The notes: generated by a model not told the origin, from the letters alone. DNA of 64,000 bases from Perkinsus chesapeaki ATCC PRA-425 (GCA_013115145.1 JAAPAO010000108.1:1-64000), one strand, 5' to 3'; numbered from the stretch's first letter, positions 39,636 through 47,619 are shown. Program-made: numbers and translations.

Positions 39636-42600
39636 ATGGACTCGGATGCGTCACTAGAGGTTGACGGGCCACCGTTGTTGATCCCCGATCTTAATAACGG
39701 TCCAGCGGCGCCCTCTGGATCTGCCGCTGACGCCTCCTCCCGGTTACCAGCTATACCAGAGCCGGTTCCGGAGGATATATTGAAGCCTATTGGGGAGATA
39801 GATGAGAGGAGAGAGAAGTTGATGCAGTGGGAGCGAGTTAAACTGCACAAGTAGTATGGGAAGGGGGAAGACAGCTAAATTATGTAGCGATATACGTTGA
39901 ATGTTGTATTGAGAAAGTGCCCTAGCAAAAACTCAACTATGTAGACATATACGGGCGGCATCATTGCCCGGTTTAAATGCGCCTCGGCTGTGTGGCGACT
40001 GCATCTGAGCCGGGGGCGGTCTTGATGAGCTGTAAACGTATATAGATGTTTCATCTCCCAAGTGTAGGAGGTAAGTCTGCCATAACTGTATTACCCATAG
40101 ACTTAGTAAGTATTAAGTAAGCACCGTGGTATCATTCTTGGTTGGATTCACTGGTTGCTTGTTGTCCATGTATAATATTATTGTCAGGCGAACTATGGTG
40201 TTCTCTGTACCACGTTTTGAGAAAGCCTACCTACTTTCATTAGAGCCCAAGCTTCGTCGAAGCCTATGGGTGCCAGCAGTGGCTTTTATTGCGTAATAAT
40301 CATAAAGAAAGTATAAATGATTATATTAATAACCCTTATTAGGTTTGCTCTTGTATGTCTACTGTATCCAGCTATATGGATTGATAAGTGGGACACGTCC
40401 GCCAATATACTTTTTAACCTATGCTGGATTGTCATAATTGCCTTGAGTACTACTAGAATCGCCGGACTCGGATGTCATCCGGGTTCAGGTCTATTCGTAC
40501 TTTTGACGTTTCATTTCTCAATACCGCCAAGTCGATTCTTGGAGCTCTATATTCAGCTTTGGGCAGGCTTCACCATGACTGCTGCCACACTACTTGGTAC
40601 ACCTTATAGAGTTGCCACCTTAACAGGCAAGCAGGGGGAGGGTCATGCAGCAGCGTGGAAGGGAAAGTGTTACTGGTTACCTAGAGATATAATGGAAAGG
40701 TTTATAGAAATATCTTACCAGTGCGTAAGCAAAAGCACAAGCCTAATGGCTCATTGAATAAATATCAAATGTGTTGTTTCTGGTAGCCTTGATGTCCCTC
40801 TTTGGCGCCCTTAGCCTTGTGAAGTTGTATAATCTTTTTGTGGGTCGGCCGTCACCGTTGCCCGTATGTTACCCCATGAATTCAGTTAGGAAATGTTATC
40901 GTTCCGGTAGGACGTGCTTTTCGAAAATTCGGGATTGCTATGGTGACTACTGCGCGATTGTATTTGTGGTTGTTACTTCAGTGAGAATCTCCTCGAAGGC
41001 CAGGTGGCCATAACTGACATTAATGCTTTCCACATAGGTACAGACTATAGCGTTGCTTTTCCCGGTGCCAACCTTGGTGTTGCTGATATATCCGTCTTCC
41101 TTGACCTTATCACCATGTAAAAGCTACTACCCGACTTAGGGCTTTCCATTTCATCTTTATTCTTGTTAGAATGTATTTCTCTGTATACACTCCTCTGAGG
41201 ATCCGCAGGCTATTTCCAGTGGCGGTTATCGTTAATTGTCTGTATATTGGTATATCAATAGGGATGGGGGTCCCCTCGTATGGCCCTGACTCGGACGTTA
41301 TTGAGTCACCGTCGACAGATCGCTGGTTTGCAGTGTAATATTGGCGCATATGGCTGTCTGCTGCTGTTGCTGCTGTCATGATGGTTCAGGTCCCTATCCT
41401 TGGTGCTTGTTGTGAGCTCTATTCTTTGTCTTACCGGCAAATACCGTCTAGAGCTATTTCAAAGGACCAACTTCTTACGGTTGGAGGTCTCGCAACGCCG
41501 AATTGATGTAGCGTGTCCGGTGAAGTAGAAGTAGTAGGCTAGTTGTTTGGTCAGGTTTTGGAGAGGACTATAGTGGCATTCGATAGCTCTAATGATAAGG
41601 CAACGAGGGTGACGCAGATGCAGTTAACGCATAAGGTGTGTAATCGGCCTGCGGGGGCGACATTCTTTTCCTACCTCAGAGGCTGCTGCTGATGGAAAAG
41701 TTAATATTTCGGGCACGGTCCACTGGGCTCAGCGGTTTGAACGTCCACAATGGTCAGCTGGCCTGTGATCTGGATCATGCTCTCTCTTTGGTAACAGTGA
41801 ACTCAGCCGGCTTCGCCGAATTTTGCTGGGTAGGTGCGGAAATCGGAGAAGTCTCTCTTCGTGTTGGATTTCCAAAAGGAAGTCCTCATGGAGGGAATGT
41901 CGTCACATCAGCAGCAAGAGCAGCAACGAAGGGTTAGTCAGCTCGCGCACTCCCCTCGCCTATCCATTTTCAGATGGCATCTGGTGAAACGCCAAAGTCG
42001 GGAGCTGAATCGGGCAGCCGTGGTGGCGGTGGCCATGCCCCAACGGCATCGCTACTGTACTGCTCGGCGCTGTACACGCCAATGTCGAGTGTGGCGGCTC
42101 CTGGATCGAGAATAGGCCCATCACGGTAAGGCTGCAATAATGCCTCATCAAAGGTCATAGTAGGAGCTCGCTTAGAAAATACGATTGGCTATTTCAGTTA
42201 TAAGTCGATCTCTTAATGGTATTCAGATACGACACAGTAGGCGGCGGCACCCCATCAGTGACCGATCTTCCTGCCGAACTTCGACAAGGAGCGGAGTGCT
42301 TCGTTGAAAACTCTGCCAAATTGCTGGAACGTGTGGGCCGCGACTTCACGCTGGATGTTGAGGGGCTATGGGGTGACCATGTGGTAAGTGGTGTGTTTGC
42401 CTTGTCCATGGTGACGGAGCAGCCTTAAAGCTTCTATATTGTCTTTATTAAACATGTGCAAATCGTGAAAATCAGTTACGGTTAGGGTACGATTCGCGGC
42501 ATGGCTCTGAACCGTAGCCTACGATCTCTATGTAGATCACTTGCGGTGTAAAGTGTTGAACTTAACCTTTTTATTTATGTAGGAGGAAAACCGTAGCAAA

Positions 42601-45244
42601 CCCAGTTCTGTTGCTGCACTGTACTCGGCCGTCGCTCGAGCCTGTCTGCCAGATGATCAAGCTAATCGTATTCTTAGCATTGGTGAGTACATAAGTTGGA
42701 GACTTCCTTAGTGCTCCTGGTTTAGGTTCAGAAGCATCTGATGGCTCACAGTGCTGTCCTGTCTACGAACGATTCCTTGCGGAGGTCTGCAGCCGGTACC
42801 TGCCATCTGTACCTTATCACAACGCATTGCACGCGGCACAAGTAGCTCATCATTGGTAACTACTCAGGAGCGAAGTCGTTCCTTGATTCCCGCGTGCCCT
42901 CAGCGCAACGTGCATAAACTCCTTGGGAGTGCGTTCGGCACTTTCTGACCTCGATTGGGCATCCCTTATCATTGCCTGTCTCTGCCACGATGTGGGGCAC
43001 TTTGGTCGAACAAACGGCTTTCTCGTTAAAACAAGGCATCCTTTGGCGCTCCGGTAAACCCGTGTGTTATACACCCTGAGTTTCATTACTGTATAATAGG
43101 TATAACGACAGATCAGTGATGGAGAACTACCATGCAGCAACGACATTTGCTTTGCTAAAGGAAAGCGAGGATTGGGATATATCTCGAGGCCTGTCAAGGT
43201 GTCACCTCTTCTCCTTGCATCAGTTTTCCGCTAATTATTTATAGTCACTAGAGTCTACTGGCTACACTAGTTCCAAGTCTGGATAGTGTTAGTGTCACGT
43301 GTTTAGTACAATTTGTACTTTGTACGTTGTATAAAATAACTACCTCGAGAGCCCGATTTGGTTGATATATAATCTTTCCTAGGCCCACCAGAGGCGATGA
43401 AGCTGTTGTACAGAGCACTCACCGACACTTTTGTCAGGTCGGAGCTGAAACGGTTTCGCAGTCAAATAGTGACTTTGATATTGAGCACAGACATTGGCAC
43501 ACAACGGAAGCTATTGGACAAGATAGAAGTATCATACACTGCCATATATTCCCATCATTCTCCTATTGCCAGGAGCGAGTGCAAGCTGGGGCACCCTTCA
43601 GTATAGCACAGTTCCCTGAAGACTCCCGTATAATACGGGAGCTCTGTATCTGTATGGCCGACTCAGGACATGTCTGCCTTGCTTGGGACATGCACTATAA
43701 ATGGGCCATACGACTGTGTAGGTGCCCATATCATTGCAATCGAATCATCTGCAATTTCTCAGCCTCTGAGTTTGCAGCAGAATCGCTAGAATTGGCAAGG
43801 TCCAATCGAGGGCCGCCACCATCGTCACCGACATTCCAGGCAAGCTCCCCGAGCTCACCTCCTGCCGGCGATCAACTTAACTTTATCAATCGTTGTACGT
43901 ATTGTTATTCCATAATCCCTTACGGAGTGCTTCAGGTCCCTTAGCGTTGCTTCAAGCGATTGGAAGGCTTGTGGATATAGATACCACTGAGTTTGCTAAG
44001 AATGCAAGGGAATGGATGGTGAAAGTCGAGTATGCTATTGATGATAACCTAACACGGTGGAGCATGCTAGAAGAAGAGGAACAAAAGAAGGCACCACCGC
44101 CGAAACGGTAAGGACTTTGGTCGTCAGAGTGATGATGAGGTCTTCGTTTAGGGAGCCGCGTACGGTGGTGGTGGAGTCGGGCGATGGCCGGTCGCCGAGA
44201 GGGAAGAGGAGCTCATCTGCAGACGAATCACCTTCGTAATAATTTCCTTAAAAATAGTGGCCCGTAAAACTAAAAGATTTCGGCAATAATGCCGCCTATC
44301 ATATTCGCTCTGAAATACTTTGTGTTTCAGGAATGATGATGATGACGAGGATGATGATAGAAGGCCTATGGTTAGCTACCGAGAGCTTTACGGGGATAAG
44401 AGTAAATCACAGAGGTAAGTTAGGTACAATAGGCAGCATTCCGACTGAGCCTCTCAGCGATGAGGAGGAGGATGGTATCCCAATGGTGAGCTACAGAGAA
44501 GCATATGGCGGCGGATCGCAGAACAAAAGGTATTCGATGTCTCTGTGCTACACTTGCCATTTCTACACCCCTCAGTACTGAGATGGGAAAATCTATTGAT
44601 AGCGATGAGGAGCCTCCTATGTTGAGCTACTCCGCTCTATATAATGCTGATGGCAGCAGTCACACGCAGGCAGCATCTAGCAGGCAACATACACGCTCTC
44701 TTTCCAGTAGTGTAGTGCCATACCAATAGGCCTGTTACCGCCTCTGGCTTCACCTCCAGCGACGAACCTCCGCTTCTGAGCTATTCCGCACTCTATGGTG
44801 CCGATGGTAGAAGCATTGAAGGTGGACAGAACCCAAGGTAGGCAAGGCTCAACGAAGTTAATATCTTGGATATTGTGGAAATGGCAGGAGCAGGTCGCAA
44901 CTAGATGATAGCCATGATGACGATGAGCCCCCATTGATGAGCTATACTGAACTTTATGATCACCAACGGTAAGAGCTCTGCTGGTTGCTGTCGGTATTGT
45001 TGTTACGGATAGAGGAACAAGCGATGACAGTGGGGATGTCCCCATGTTGAGCTATGGTGATCTGTACACTAAGTCGGGCGCGACAATAATTCAATCCAAG
45101 TAGACCGCGGGGTTAAGTATGAAATAATTTCATTTGATCTCACTTATCAGGGATAGCGATGATGCTTCTGAGCCGCCAATGATTAGCTATAGTGACCTTT
45201 ACGGCAAGAAGAAATCAAAGGAAAGCGGTGGCTCTAAGGACTAG
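39636..45244 (+). CDS. Class I 3',5'-cyclic nucleotide phosphodiesterase with N-terminal transmembrane segments and a repeat tail
   Basis: PYHNALHAAQV (~42810), CHDVGHFGRTN (HDxxHxGxxN, ~42985), SVMENYH, LILSTDI and CMADSGH; hydrophobic exons at 40.3-41.0 kb, as in apicomplexan PDEs; in-frame exon chain to the stop at 45244. Confidence 0.9.
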
Positions 45245-46405
45245 CTTATTCGAAGTTTAAGCCTGTCTCAGGCGAGGCGACGACTATTATGTTCCTCTAT
45301 ATCACGTCATTGATAATTGTATCTATTCAGCTACCATTATATACAATTGCTTCATCATCAGAGTTTCATAGGGAGTTTCACCACTCAAGAAGAGATCGAG
45401 TTTGTAGTCTTAGCACAAGGAACTTCCCTGAGAGAAGGTACCGAGCAGCAGCCACGCTCGGAACTTATATAGAGCGCGACACGACCATACCGTATATCTG
45501 AATAGTAATTGGTGGAAAGGGCATGCGAGGTCATTGGCAAAGAGAGCTACGTATGGGAACAATTGACTTAAAGCGGCACAGTTGTCTCGCATCCTAACTC
45601 CGGAAATGATTTCCATCATTTAATGATTTCCGTGTGTGGGCCACGGCAAGGCGCACTCAATACTACAGTCGCACGACTTGCGCGCCACAAGTACCAGTCT
45701 GGCTGGTCCAATCTCTGAAAGACTACTCAAGCAGTATTCGTGATCAACATCAATCTAGTTAGAAATCAAACCCTCAGGGTGGTTTCTATCCTCCGGAACT
45801 GGCCGCCAGATGCTGGCTCGAAGCCTTCGAGTCGAAGGGAAGTCCTGGCACCGTGTCAATGACACGATAAAAGACTCGGGTACCCTGAGTCGGGCTTAGA
45901 TGCCTGCACTATCTCGTAACTTAGGGACAACGTAGTCGTAGCACAACAACTATAGATTGGGCTCATAGTTAACGATATAGGGCAGTTGAGAGTCACTCAC
46001 TGTGAGCGAGTAATACTCGCCGAGTATTACCACACAACTCGTGTGACACAAGCTGCGACCATTTCTCCTTCGTGTATGACCTCAACATAATCTTCTTCCG
46101 TCAGAACTCACTTCGCACCATCCACGTGTCACCGAGAGAATCACAAGTTATGAATCATAACTTATGATGGAGCAGCCGCAGCTCAGCTGCTGAGCCTCAG
46201 CAGCCTGACACGGTCCGTCCGGACGGCTGTGGCGCTCGCCCTGATAATCGATTACATGCGCAAAGTGGGCGAGCGAGAGTCTGTAGATGCCTCCTACTGT
46301 TGCGATCGAGGATTGAAGTTATTGCTTTCAGTTGAGTTATTAATTGTTGAAAGTACTCAGCCAGTCTTGCGCCTTTGATACGCATCAAATTTGGGTTAAT
46401 ATATA

Positions 46406-47619
46406 ATGAACCAAGAAAATAGCGCTAAGAATTGCACAAGCAGCAGTAGCAGCCCCAGAAGTGATACCAGCGTTGAAGGCACAGAGCCTAGTGTAGTGAG
46501 ATTGGAGACTGCTGACATCATTAATCAAGAAGAGCCTTCCGACTCTGATGGGAAAAGCAGTTCTGATAAAAATGTGGTCGATAATGCTACCGATGGTGAT
46601 AGTAACAAAAAGGAGGAGACTGAACTAATTCAAGATGAGAACTCACCGGGCGCCGACCCGATAGGCTGGGGTAAGTTACACTAGAATACTCGCTTTCTTA
46701 TTTATTTGTTTTAGCAATCGACAAGTTACTCAGCCGTATTGTTAAAGAGAACAGTCTAGAGCAGCTAGTAGGCTTGCTCTCTGAGATGACCAAAAGAGCG
46801 CTCATATTGCAAAATCAACTTGATATAAGTAATTTACGTAATAATGAATTGATTAAGGAGATTGACGAGCTTAAGAACGCCTTGCAAGAAGAACGGCAAC
46901 AAGTAGCGGCACCTGAGCCCCCTACCCCGCCGCCACTGATTGCACCAACAACGAGCACAACCCCAGTGATGGGGCCATCAGCCTATGATGGGATAGCAGA
47001 GCACCAGGTAGATGATACCTCCATGCTGCAGCAGCAGGCATCTCCCGGAAGGGTTACTGGTGCTACCCAACTTAATGAATTATATGAGATGCACCATATC
47101 GACCGAGATGTGCGCAGCATGTTGAGTGGTTCACGTAAAATCAAAAGACCTGATCAGCGACAGATGGTAATTGACCTGTTTCTTGATAGAGTTGGCCATG
47201 AAAGAGGCAAGGACGTCTTGGCTGCCCTGAAGGTAATAACTATTCCTTATTAGGCACCTCAGCTTCCTTTTTAGGGTGCTTCCGATGTCAATTCTGGGGA
47301 CTTGAAAACAACGCCTGACAGCAGGAGCCGGCGAAATGGGAGTCGTCGATCATCGTCTGATCAGCACCCTCTACAGGCTCGACCGGGGCCAGAGAATCGG
47401 AGCTGGTTATTTGCCCAATGTATACGTGAAGTTGAAGCAAAGATACCCTTACCAGCAACTCACCGCCATCCTCGCGGTGGCAGTGGCTCGCGGAATGATT
47501 ATTACTATGAGAGGGCCAAGTGGGGCTATCCTGGAGGGAGCTCATCTTCTGGTAGAAATCACGAAGCAGTTCGGGCTGGTGGAGGCTGGAATGGCCGGCG
47601 TGACGCTACTGGATGGTGA
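46406..47619 (+). CDS. Hypothetical coiled-coil protein with acidic N-terminus and Gly/Arg-rich C-terminus (3 exons)
   Basis: ORFs 46406, 46774 and 47302 are linked by GT-AG introns; heptad-like LQNQLDISNLRNNELIKEIDELKNALQEE. Confidence 0.65.

Follow-up and report, generated by a model that had tools for sequence, protein, structure and literature searches.

Symmetric mini-exons, each carrying one copy of a tyrosine motif, form a candidate docking tail on a Perkinsus membrane phosphodiesterase

The gene for a membrane-associated phosphodiesterase (PDE) of the clam parasite Perkinsus chesapeaki continues beyond its catalytic domain into a series of short repeat exons, which raises the question of whether these exons form a genuine part of the protein and, if so, what such a tail might do. 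The gene lies within a stretch of 64,000 nucleotides (nt) from strain ATCC PRA-425 (GCA_013115145.1 JAAPAO010000108.1:1-64000), which was analyzed at its full length and is referred to below as the window. The tail is, in our judgment, probably a selected, multivalent array of short docking motifs that would bind one cytosolic partner and in this way place or cluster the PDE; the function, the partner and the translation of all seven repeat exons are what we infer.

A regular-expression scan of all six reading frames for P[MLIV][MLIV]SY..[LA]Y returned exactly seven matches in the window (GC content about 48%) and no others, compared with a chance expectation of about 0.005 matches per window as estimated from residue frequencies. 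All seven were located on the plus strand, from 44365-44391 to 45176-45202, and were distributed over three different frames, so that they can belong to one protein only through splicing. The copies follow the nine-residue form P-[ML]-Phi-S-Y-x-x-L-Y (Phi, hydrophobic residue), with an acidic run ahead of each. When the seven units were aligned, P, S, Y and Y were invariant, and the mean column identity was 43%.

Each motif was found in an exon of its own. From the last catalytic-domain exon (43936-44107), reading remained open through a linker and seven repeat exons to the stop codon at 45242-45244. The linker exon (44152-44235, 84 nt), placed by spliced mapping, contains no motif and is bordered by phase-2 introns on either side. 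It is followed by a 95-nt phase-2 intron (44236-44330, GTAATA...TTTCAG) that leads into the array and whose retention would end the protein at ..ADESPS* (stop 44239-44241). Motif scanning and spliced mapping then placed the repeat exons, all on the plus strand. Exon 1 (44331-44414, 84 nt) encodes unit A, DDDRRPMVSYRELY, and exon 2 (44458-44529, 72 nt) encodes unit A', EEDGIPMVSYREAY, whose nearest relative is exon 1. Exon 3 (44576-44683, 108 nt) carries unit B, SDEEPPMLSYSALY, the best-conserved unit. Unit C, SSDEPPLLSYSALY, is encoded by exon 4 (44730-44837, 108 nt), unit D, DDDEPPLMSYTELY, by exon 5 (44888-44968, 81 nt), and unit E, DSGDVPMLSYGDLY, by exon 6 (45013-45099, 87 nt). The last intron (45100-45150, 51 nt, phase 2) would, if retained, end the protein at ..IIQSK* (stop 45101-45103), right after unit E. 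Exon 7 (45151-45244) encodes unit F, DASEPPMISYSDLY, with a Lys-rich end and the terminal stop.

The internal repeat exons, with lengths of 84, 72, 108, 108, 81 and 87 nt, are thus all multiples of three, and the array introns are all in phase 2, the internal ones measuring 43, 46, 46, 50, 44 and 51 nt. With the same phase on both sides, a length divisible by three and one unit per exon, the locus has the properties of a symmetric-exon repeat array. The initial annotation had described seven consecutive phase-2 exons with one repeat each, chained in frame from the catalytic domain, and its exon bounds, intron lengths and peptides were all reproduced; the assignment of the array to the PDE gene was borne out by three independent annotations in three species, each of which joins it to the catalytic domain. 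No tandem repeat was detected at the DNA level within the array by Tandem Repeats Finder, the sole match being an (ATG)n run at 44333-44358, which indicates that the copies are old and diverged. The only in-frame ATG in the tail is that of the Met inside the motif, and the tail exons are therefore translatable only by splicing from the PDE. The tail exons were assigned on the basis of sequence, annotation and orthologs. Minimum-cost gene models, which used wrong frames and skipped exons, were set aside in favor of exact mapping of the public protein. An antisense open reading frame at 44677-45045 (122 amino acids) was dismissed, as it crosses introns and has no recognizable features. For exon 5, two acceptors in the same phase are available at a distance of 6 nt (..GGCAG|GAGCAG|G..), and the tail gains or loses two residues depending on which is used; the public annotation takes the downstream one, at 44894.

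Exon 3 differs from the other repeat exons in its treatment by the public model. This model (KAF4672475.1) contains six of the seven units and joins 44529 directly to 44730. When the donors and acceptors that could link exon 3 to exon 4 were listed, no GT donor kept the frame; all frame-keeping donors were GC, the best of them at 44684 (CAG|GCAACA). Joined to the acceptor at 44730, it defines a 46-nt phase-2 GC-AG intron (44684-44729, plus strand, GCAACA...CAATAG). The nearest GT donor (44659, joined to an acceptor at 44708) would end the protein after three repeats, at ..NADGSIV*. The need for a GC donor explains why exon 3 is omitted from the public annotation. Since an independent P. chesapeaki DNA run has identical letters across 43475-45077, the GC donor is not an assembly error. 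GTAACA serves as a donor elsewhere in the PDE gene, and the corresponding position in the orthologs reads GTAAGA in P. olseni and GTAGGA in P. marinus. In the P. marinus annotations, 0.7% of introns are of the GC|GA-AG type and the median intron length is 49 nt (PMC7789003, Table 1); the short introns of the array are accordingly typical of the genome, and a GC donor, although rare, is not exceptional.

Orthologous loci from P. olseni (L001, L003) and P. marinus (L002) were compared with the window. The arrangement of one motif per phase-2 exon was common to all three species, with tail exons of 96, 96, 108, 78 and 96 nt in P. olseni, separated by GT-AG introns of 49-56 nt, and of 81, 99, 72, 84 and 88 nt in P. 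marinus. As in P. chesapeaki, lengths divisible by three were seen, in all five P. olseni exons and in the first four of P. marinus. The units were collinear and orthologous across the three species, with lineage-specific gain, loss or decay. Unit A, present in P. chesapeaki as Pc1 with a second copy (Pc2) that has no counterpart in the other two species, corresponds to Po1 and Pm1. Unit B is represented by Pc3, Po2 and Pm2, and unit D by Pc5, Po4 and Pm4. Unit C occurs as Pc4 and Po3, its motif having been lost in P. marinus; unit E occurs as Pc6 and Pm5 and has decayed to SSSYDDSY in P. olseni. For unit F (Pc7), no counterpart was found in P. olseni or P. marinus. A comparison of repeat number among orthologs, proposed at the outset as a check, yielded seven intact motifs in P. 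chesapeaki, four in P. olseni and four in P. marinus. One decayed unit was present in each of the latter two species, a different unit in each, and hence no single copy is indispensable. An array of at least five units was already present in the ancestor of the three sequenced species. As each copy occupies one symmetric phase-2 mini-exon, the array would have grown and shrunk by duplication and loss of exon-plus-intron units.

In P. marinus, a stop codon (TAA, L002 7322-7324) was found soon after unit E, and P. olseni, if the annotated 614-nt intron (L001:1374-1987) were left unspliced, would likewise end soon after unit E, at ..PPSK*. The P. olseni models (P0002, P0005 and P0008) all join the PDE tail through this 614-nt intron to the next gene, which encodes a coiled-coil protein. 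The counterpart of that gene in the window has its own ATG near 46400 (about 46400-46681), and P. marinus has it as a gene of its own (from L002:7810); for these reasons, the fusion in P. olseni is probably an annotation artifact. The first repeat exon of P. marinus (L002:6705-6785, 81 nt) is omitted from the public model; it has good GT-AG sites, contains the motif DDDDVPMMSYRDMY and splices cleanly.

Codon usage within the motif was compared for the 15 intact units of the three species. Behind the invariant residues, the codons varied: four Pro codons and five Leu codons were used, and TAC and TAT were about equally frequent at both Tyr positions, while the motif Ser codon was always AGY. 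For the nine motif codons in eleven orthologous pairs, which are not independent of one another, the pooled proportion of synonymous differences (pS) was 0.76, a value near saturation, and that of nonsynonymous differences (pN) was 0.067, giving a ratio of about 0.09. Identity between orthologs reached 88% in the motif compared with 41% in the flanking residues. The earlier impression that the motif was held while its flanks diverged was thus sustained, and the codon pattern indicates a motif under purifying selection with flanks that drift. The motif of exon 3 was identical in all nine residues to those of P. olseni and P. marinus despite five to seven synonymous differences, and the exon as such has evolved under constraint at the protein level during most, if not all, of its history.

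The structure of residues 520-1038 of the public protein was predicted with AlphaFold2 from a 30-sequence alignment. The predicted local distance difference test (pLDDT) exceeded 90 for the catalytic domain and was below 50 for the whole tail, with block means of 28-47. The sole secondary structure in the tail consisted of helices of three to six residues, placed on Y-x-x-L-Y in five of the six motifs. The tail, about 190-225 residues long, was composed of 17.5% Ser, 14.8% Asp and 10% Gly and had a net charge of -19; its 12 Tyr residues all fell within motifs, evenly spaced in a Ser/Gly/Asp-rich spacer. Such features are typical of disordered regions with short binding motifs and not of a folded repeat domain. 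A tandem-repeat fold such as a solenoid or propeller was rejected because of the low pLDDT and because the number of units varies between species. As it lies downstream of a cytosolic enzyme domain, the tail would face the cytosol.

The distribution of the tail was then considered. When 1.84 billion representative proteins were searched with a profile built from the seven units, two matches were real, both Perkinsus PDE orthologs: the public protein itself (P0001, KAF4672475.1; E 2e-63) and the P. olseni ortholog (P0002; E 2e-26). Of the other two matches, one was a junk tandem repeat and the other a repeat protein from a bacterium. The statement that no such tail was known on other PDEs therefore held for this search. 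A word-based homolog search with the P. chesapeaki tail returned only the query itself, whereas the P. olseni query did find homologs. Metagenome contigs were scanned with two degenerate DNA patterns; the first scan gave no match and the second five single chance matches, with no array among them. In the databases searched, the tail is restricted to this Perkinsus ortholog group.

Searches for structural or family resemblance gave no further relatives. Look-alikes of the tail in the ESM Atlas reached an uninformative best score of 0.59, no match to Rfam was obtained for 43500-46000, and no Pfam family covers the tail. The likeness to Pfam DUF1653 (PF07866), with 26.2 bits summed from partial matches at positions 19-36 (18 of 62) and no stretch passing alone, was judged a chance resemblance of a short peptide; the P. 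olseni and P. marinus tails had no DUF1653 match. The same judgment was applied to PDB entry 3bdu, a putative lipoprotein with a short likeness to the motif, which carries DDETGMISYTDAYGQQ. An unrelated protein from ENA (P0003, 189 amino acids) contains five tandem QWIVSYSALYNTxxST copies beside a (TH)n run, and the resemblance of its SYSALYN to unit B is most likely due to chance in a translated DNA repeat. A full-text literature search for motif peptide strings returned no relevant paper. The gene is public with six repeats; in the literature searched, no description of its tail as an array of motifs was present.

In the docking-array reading that we favor, each copy would act as a short linear motif. 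On binding, it would fold into a helical turn over Y-x-x-L-Y and fit a hydrophobic groove on one cytosolic partner. The presence of several copies on a single flexible tail would provide avidity or allow clustering, and the PDE would be fixed at a particular membrane or scaffold, where local pools of cyclic AMP or cyclic GMP could be shaped. The 15 intact units were compared with known motif patterns. The loose YxxPhi and Phi-x-x-Phi-Phi patterns each fitted 14 of them, and the core of the LC3-interacting region (LIR) fitted 12; none satisfied the stricter xLIR pattern. PPxY, LPxY, NPxY and YPxL each matched none of the units, and acidic dileucine matched three. The initial annotation had proposed that acidic residues followed by Y-x-x-L match both the YxxPhi sorting signal and the LIR. 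The loose cores were present as claimed, but the acidic residues were located at -6 and further from the motif Tyr (position 0), not at -1 to -3, and the strict LIR form was absent. An interface longer than that of YxxPhi or LIR is indicated by Pro(-4), Ser(-1) and Tyr(+4) and by the hydrophobic residues at -3 and -2.

Several observations weigh against this interpretation. The motif has no known binding partner, and the profile search revealed no other protein with the motif that would indicate a shared reader domain, although single copies would escape such a search. Both P. olseni and P. marinus have a decayed unit. Exon 3 depends on a GC donor, a type as rare in P. marinus as noted above, and no read from the tail was present in two small P. 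chesapeaki RNA runs, which hold almost none of the gene.

The most concrete sub-hypothesis is that the copies are YxxPhi sorting signals read by the mu subunits of adaptor protein (AP) complexes, and would direct the membrane PDE into endocytosis or post-Golgi sorting; we regard it as unlikely. The Y-x-x-[LIMFV] pattern is that found in 14 of the 15 units, the tail follows the cytosolic catalytic domain of a polytopic membrane protein and would by its position lie on the cytosolic side, and its predicted disorder is like that of adaptor-binding tails. However, the pattern is very loose, it does not account for the invariance of Pro(-4), Ser(-1) and Tyr(+4), and the second P. chesapeaki unit has Ala at the Phi position. 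To our knowledge, arrays of four to seven YxxPhi signals are not a feature of sorting tails.

A different possibility, which we hold to be unlikely, is that the motif is a Perkinsus-specific docking motif not described before, whose copy number on the PDE is set by RNA processing. By sequence, any symmetric tail exon could be skipped without a frameshift, and exon 3, with its GC donor, would be the obvious candidate; alternatively, a phase-2 intron would be retained. Retention of six of the eight phase-2 introns within 44108-45150 would produce a stop directly after the exon; such stops follow in general when phase-2 introns have GTA[AG] donors. The initial annotation had called the array splice-tunable; what is seen is a unit number that has changed in evolution and a single weak GC donor. 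If this reading were true, graded tails with zero to seven docking sites would result.

It is more doubtful still that the motif acts intramolecularly or by phosphorylation, with Ser and Tyr sites tuning activity, with the tail folding back on the catalytic domain, or with Tyr "stickers" mediating self-association. The Ser and both Tyr residues are invariant, the even spacing of the Tyr residues in a Ser/Gly/Asp-rich spacer would suit such a role, and several mammalian PDE families are regulated via their termini. On the other hand, no motif was confidently packed against the catalytic domain in the AlphaFold2 model, the net charge of -19 argues against self-association, and the invariant Pro and hydrophobic positions resemble a binding interface more than a kinase site.

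A link of the PDE to Atg8-decorated membranes or autophagic turnover, in which the copies would be Atg8-interacting motifs (LIR, also termed AIM), appears quite improbable. It would account for the [WFY]-x-x-[LIV] core seen in 12 of the 15 units and for the Asp or Glu at x2 in five of the seven P. chesapeaki units, and a Ser immediately ahead of the aromatic residue is reminiscent of LIRs controlled by phosphorylation, for example in FUNDC1. Against it stand the failure of every unit to fit the xLIR pattern, the Ser, hydrophobic residues and Pro at -1, -2/-3 and -4, where LIRs are usually acidic, the Met at the Gamma position in unit A of P. olseni and P. marinus, and the second invariant Tyr, which it does not explain.

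Finally, it is very improbable that the tail is a gene-model artifact or neutral low-complexity sequence, with the real protein ending at ..ADESPS* or the exons present in no transcript: the immediate stop upon retention of the intron at 44236, the lack of tail reads in the two small RNA runs, the differing unit numbers among annotations and the fused P. olseni models are compatible with it, but it is contradicted by the purifying selection seen on the motif in three species despite saturation at synonymous sites, by the conserved phase and exon layout, and by the position of the sole in-frame tail Met inside the motif, so that translation is available only via splicing from the PDE.

The whole PDE gene was located at 39636-45244 on the plus strand by exact spliced mapping of the public protein (KAF4672475.1 / A0A7J6MLR7_PERCH, 1038 amino acids), which consists of an N-terminal multi-pass membrane region with at least five hydrophobic segments (residues 94-277), a class I PDE catalytic domain and the repeat tail. 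The catalytic domain, encoded by plus-strand exons within 42726-44107 (residues about 562-793 plus C-terminal helices), was recognized from single exons as well. Pfam PDEase_I (PF00233) matched residues 562-793 with 175.2 bits against a cut-off of 24.8 (E 2.4e-51), spanning profile positions 1-228 of 238, which places the protein among class I PDEs. In an alignment of 30 PDE domains, the metal-site columns H44 N45 H48, H84 D85 H88, D157 and D199 were near-invariant, and the query has them, including the H-N-x-x-H and H-D-x-x-H motifs and the later Asp. The top PDB matches were PDE catalytic domains (E about 1e-29). The public name, "calmodulin-dependent PDE1B", was not supported, as PDE1B structures scored 84-85 bits, below unnamed PDE entries, PDE8A, PDE4 and PDE3 (93-104 bits). 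An N-terminus with at least five hydrophobic membrane segments also differs from the layout of PDE1.

A 176-nt RNA contig (X1) supports the upstream intron 41117-41169 and indicates that the PDE gene is transcribed. The public P. chesapeaki model contains two unusually long introns in the membrane region, 39851-40187 (337 nt) and 40597-41037 (441 nt), with open frames inside; at these introns the P. olseni protein retains residues (..GTPYRVATITGTDYS..) that the P. chesapeaki model does not have. The latter may thus be without some membrane-region exons. The public P. marinus model P0007 (512 amino acids) begins within the gene (L002:5001), without the membrane region. A contig of the independent DNA run (X4) has one base fewer at 41064, in coding exon 41038-41116, which would cause a frameshift; the RNA contig agrees with the window at this position, and the missing base could reflect variation between strains or haplotypes, or else an error in the contig. 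An insertion of 21 nt, located in an intron after position 42464, was also seen in this DNA run. An assembly gap (run of N) is located at 33776-33930, upstream of the PDE gene.

The significance of the tail would lie in the dependence of cyclic-nucleotide signaling on PDE location. The regulatory and targeting parts of PDEs of alveolate parasites are largely undefined (PMC10865986). With one conserved peptide in many copies on one membrane PDE, in a culturable genus of shellfish parasites, the tail is a clean candidate for a targeting module, and its peptide offers a direct handle for partner finding. It also represents a tidy case of a motif array arising from symmetric mini-exons, with selection on the motif but on no single copy. 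The scope is narrow, comprising one ortholog group in one genus.

Among known systems, the closest in overall architecture are the alveolate membrane PDEs (Plasmodium PDE alpha to delta and most Toxoplasma PDEs, which have a layout like that of human PDE3), with N-terminal transmembrane helices followed by a class I catalytic domain (PMC10865986). The Perkinsus PDE shares with them the transmembrane N-terminus and a PDEase_I domain with the His/Asp metal-site motifs. The catalytic domain of alveolate PDEs is described as C-terminal, with no repeat tail mentioned in that review (PMC10865986). In contrast, the Perkinsus protein extends about 190-225 residues beyond it.

At the level of the tail, the comparison falls to short-motif systems. 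Multivalent arrays in disordered tails are represented by the DPF motifs of Eps15, the NPF motifs of epsin, EspF, and the heptads of the carboxy-terminal domain of RNA polymerase II. The Perkinsus tail resembles these in its many short copies, in its disorder, and in a copy number that varies by species while the motif is kept and the spacers drift. It differs in that P-[ML]-Phi-S-Y-x-x-L-Y matches none of their motifs, in its position on an enzyme and not an adaptor, in having an exon for each copy, and in having no known reader domain. YxxPhi signals and Atg8-binding LIRs are similar insofar as their four-residue cores fit most units and the tail is disordered and would be cytosolic, whereas the conserved core in Perkinsus is nine residues long and has three further invariant positions. 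In its origin, the array is comparable to repeat proteins produced by symmetric-exon duplication. The units of the classical cases are folded modules, whereas those of Perkinsus are 24-36 residues long and do not fold; the 2-2 phase, the lengths divisible by three, and the gain and loss of units without frameshift are common to both.

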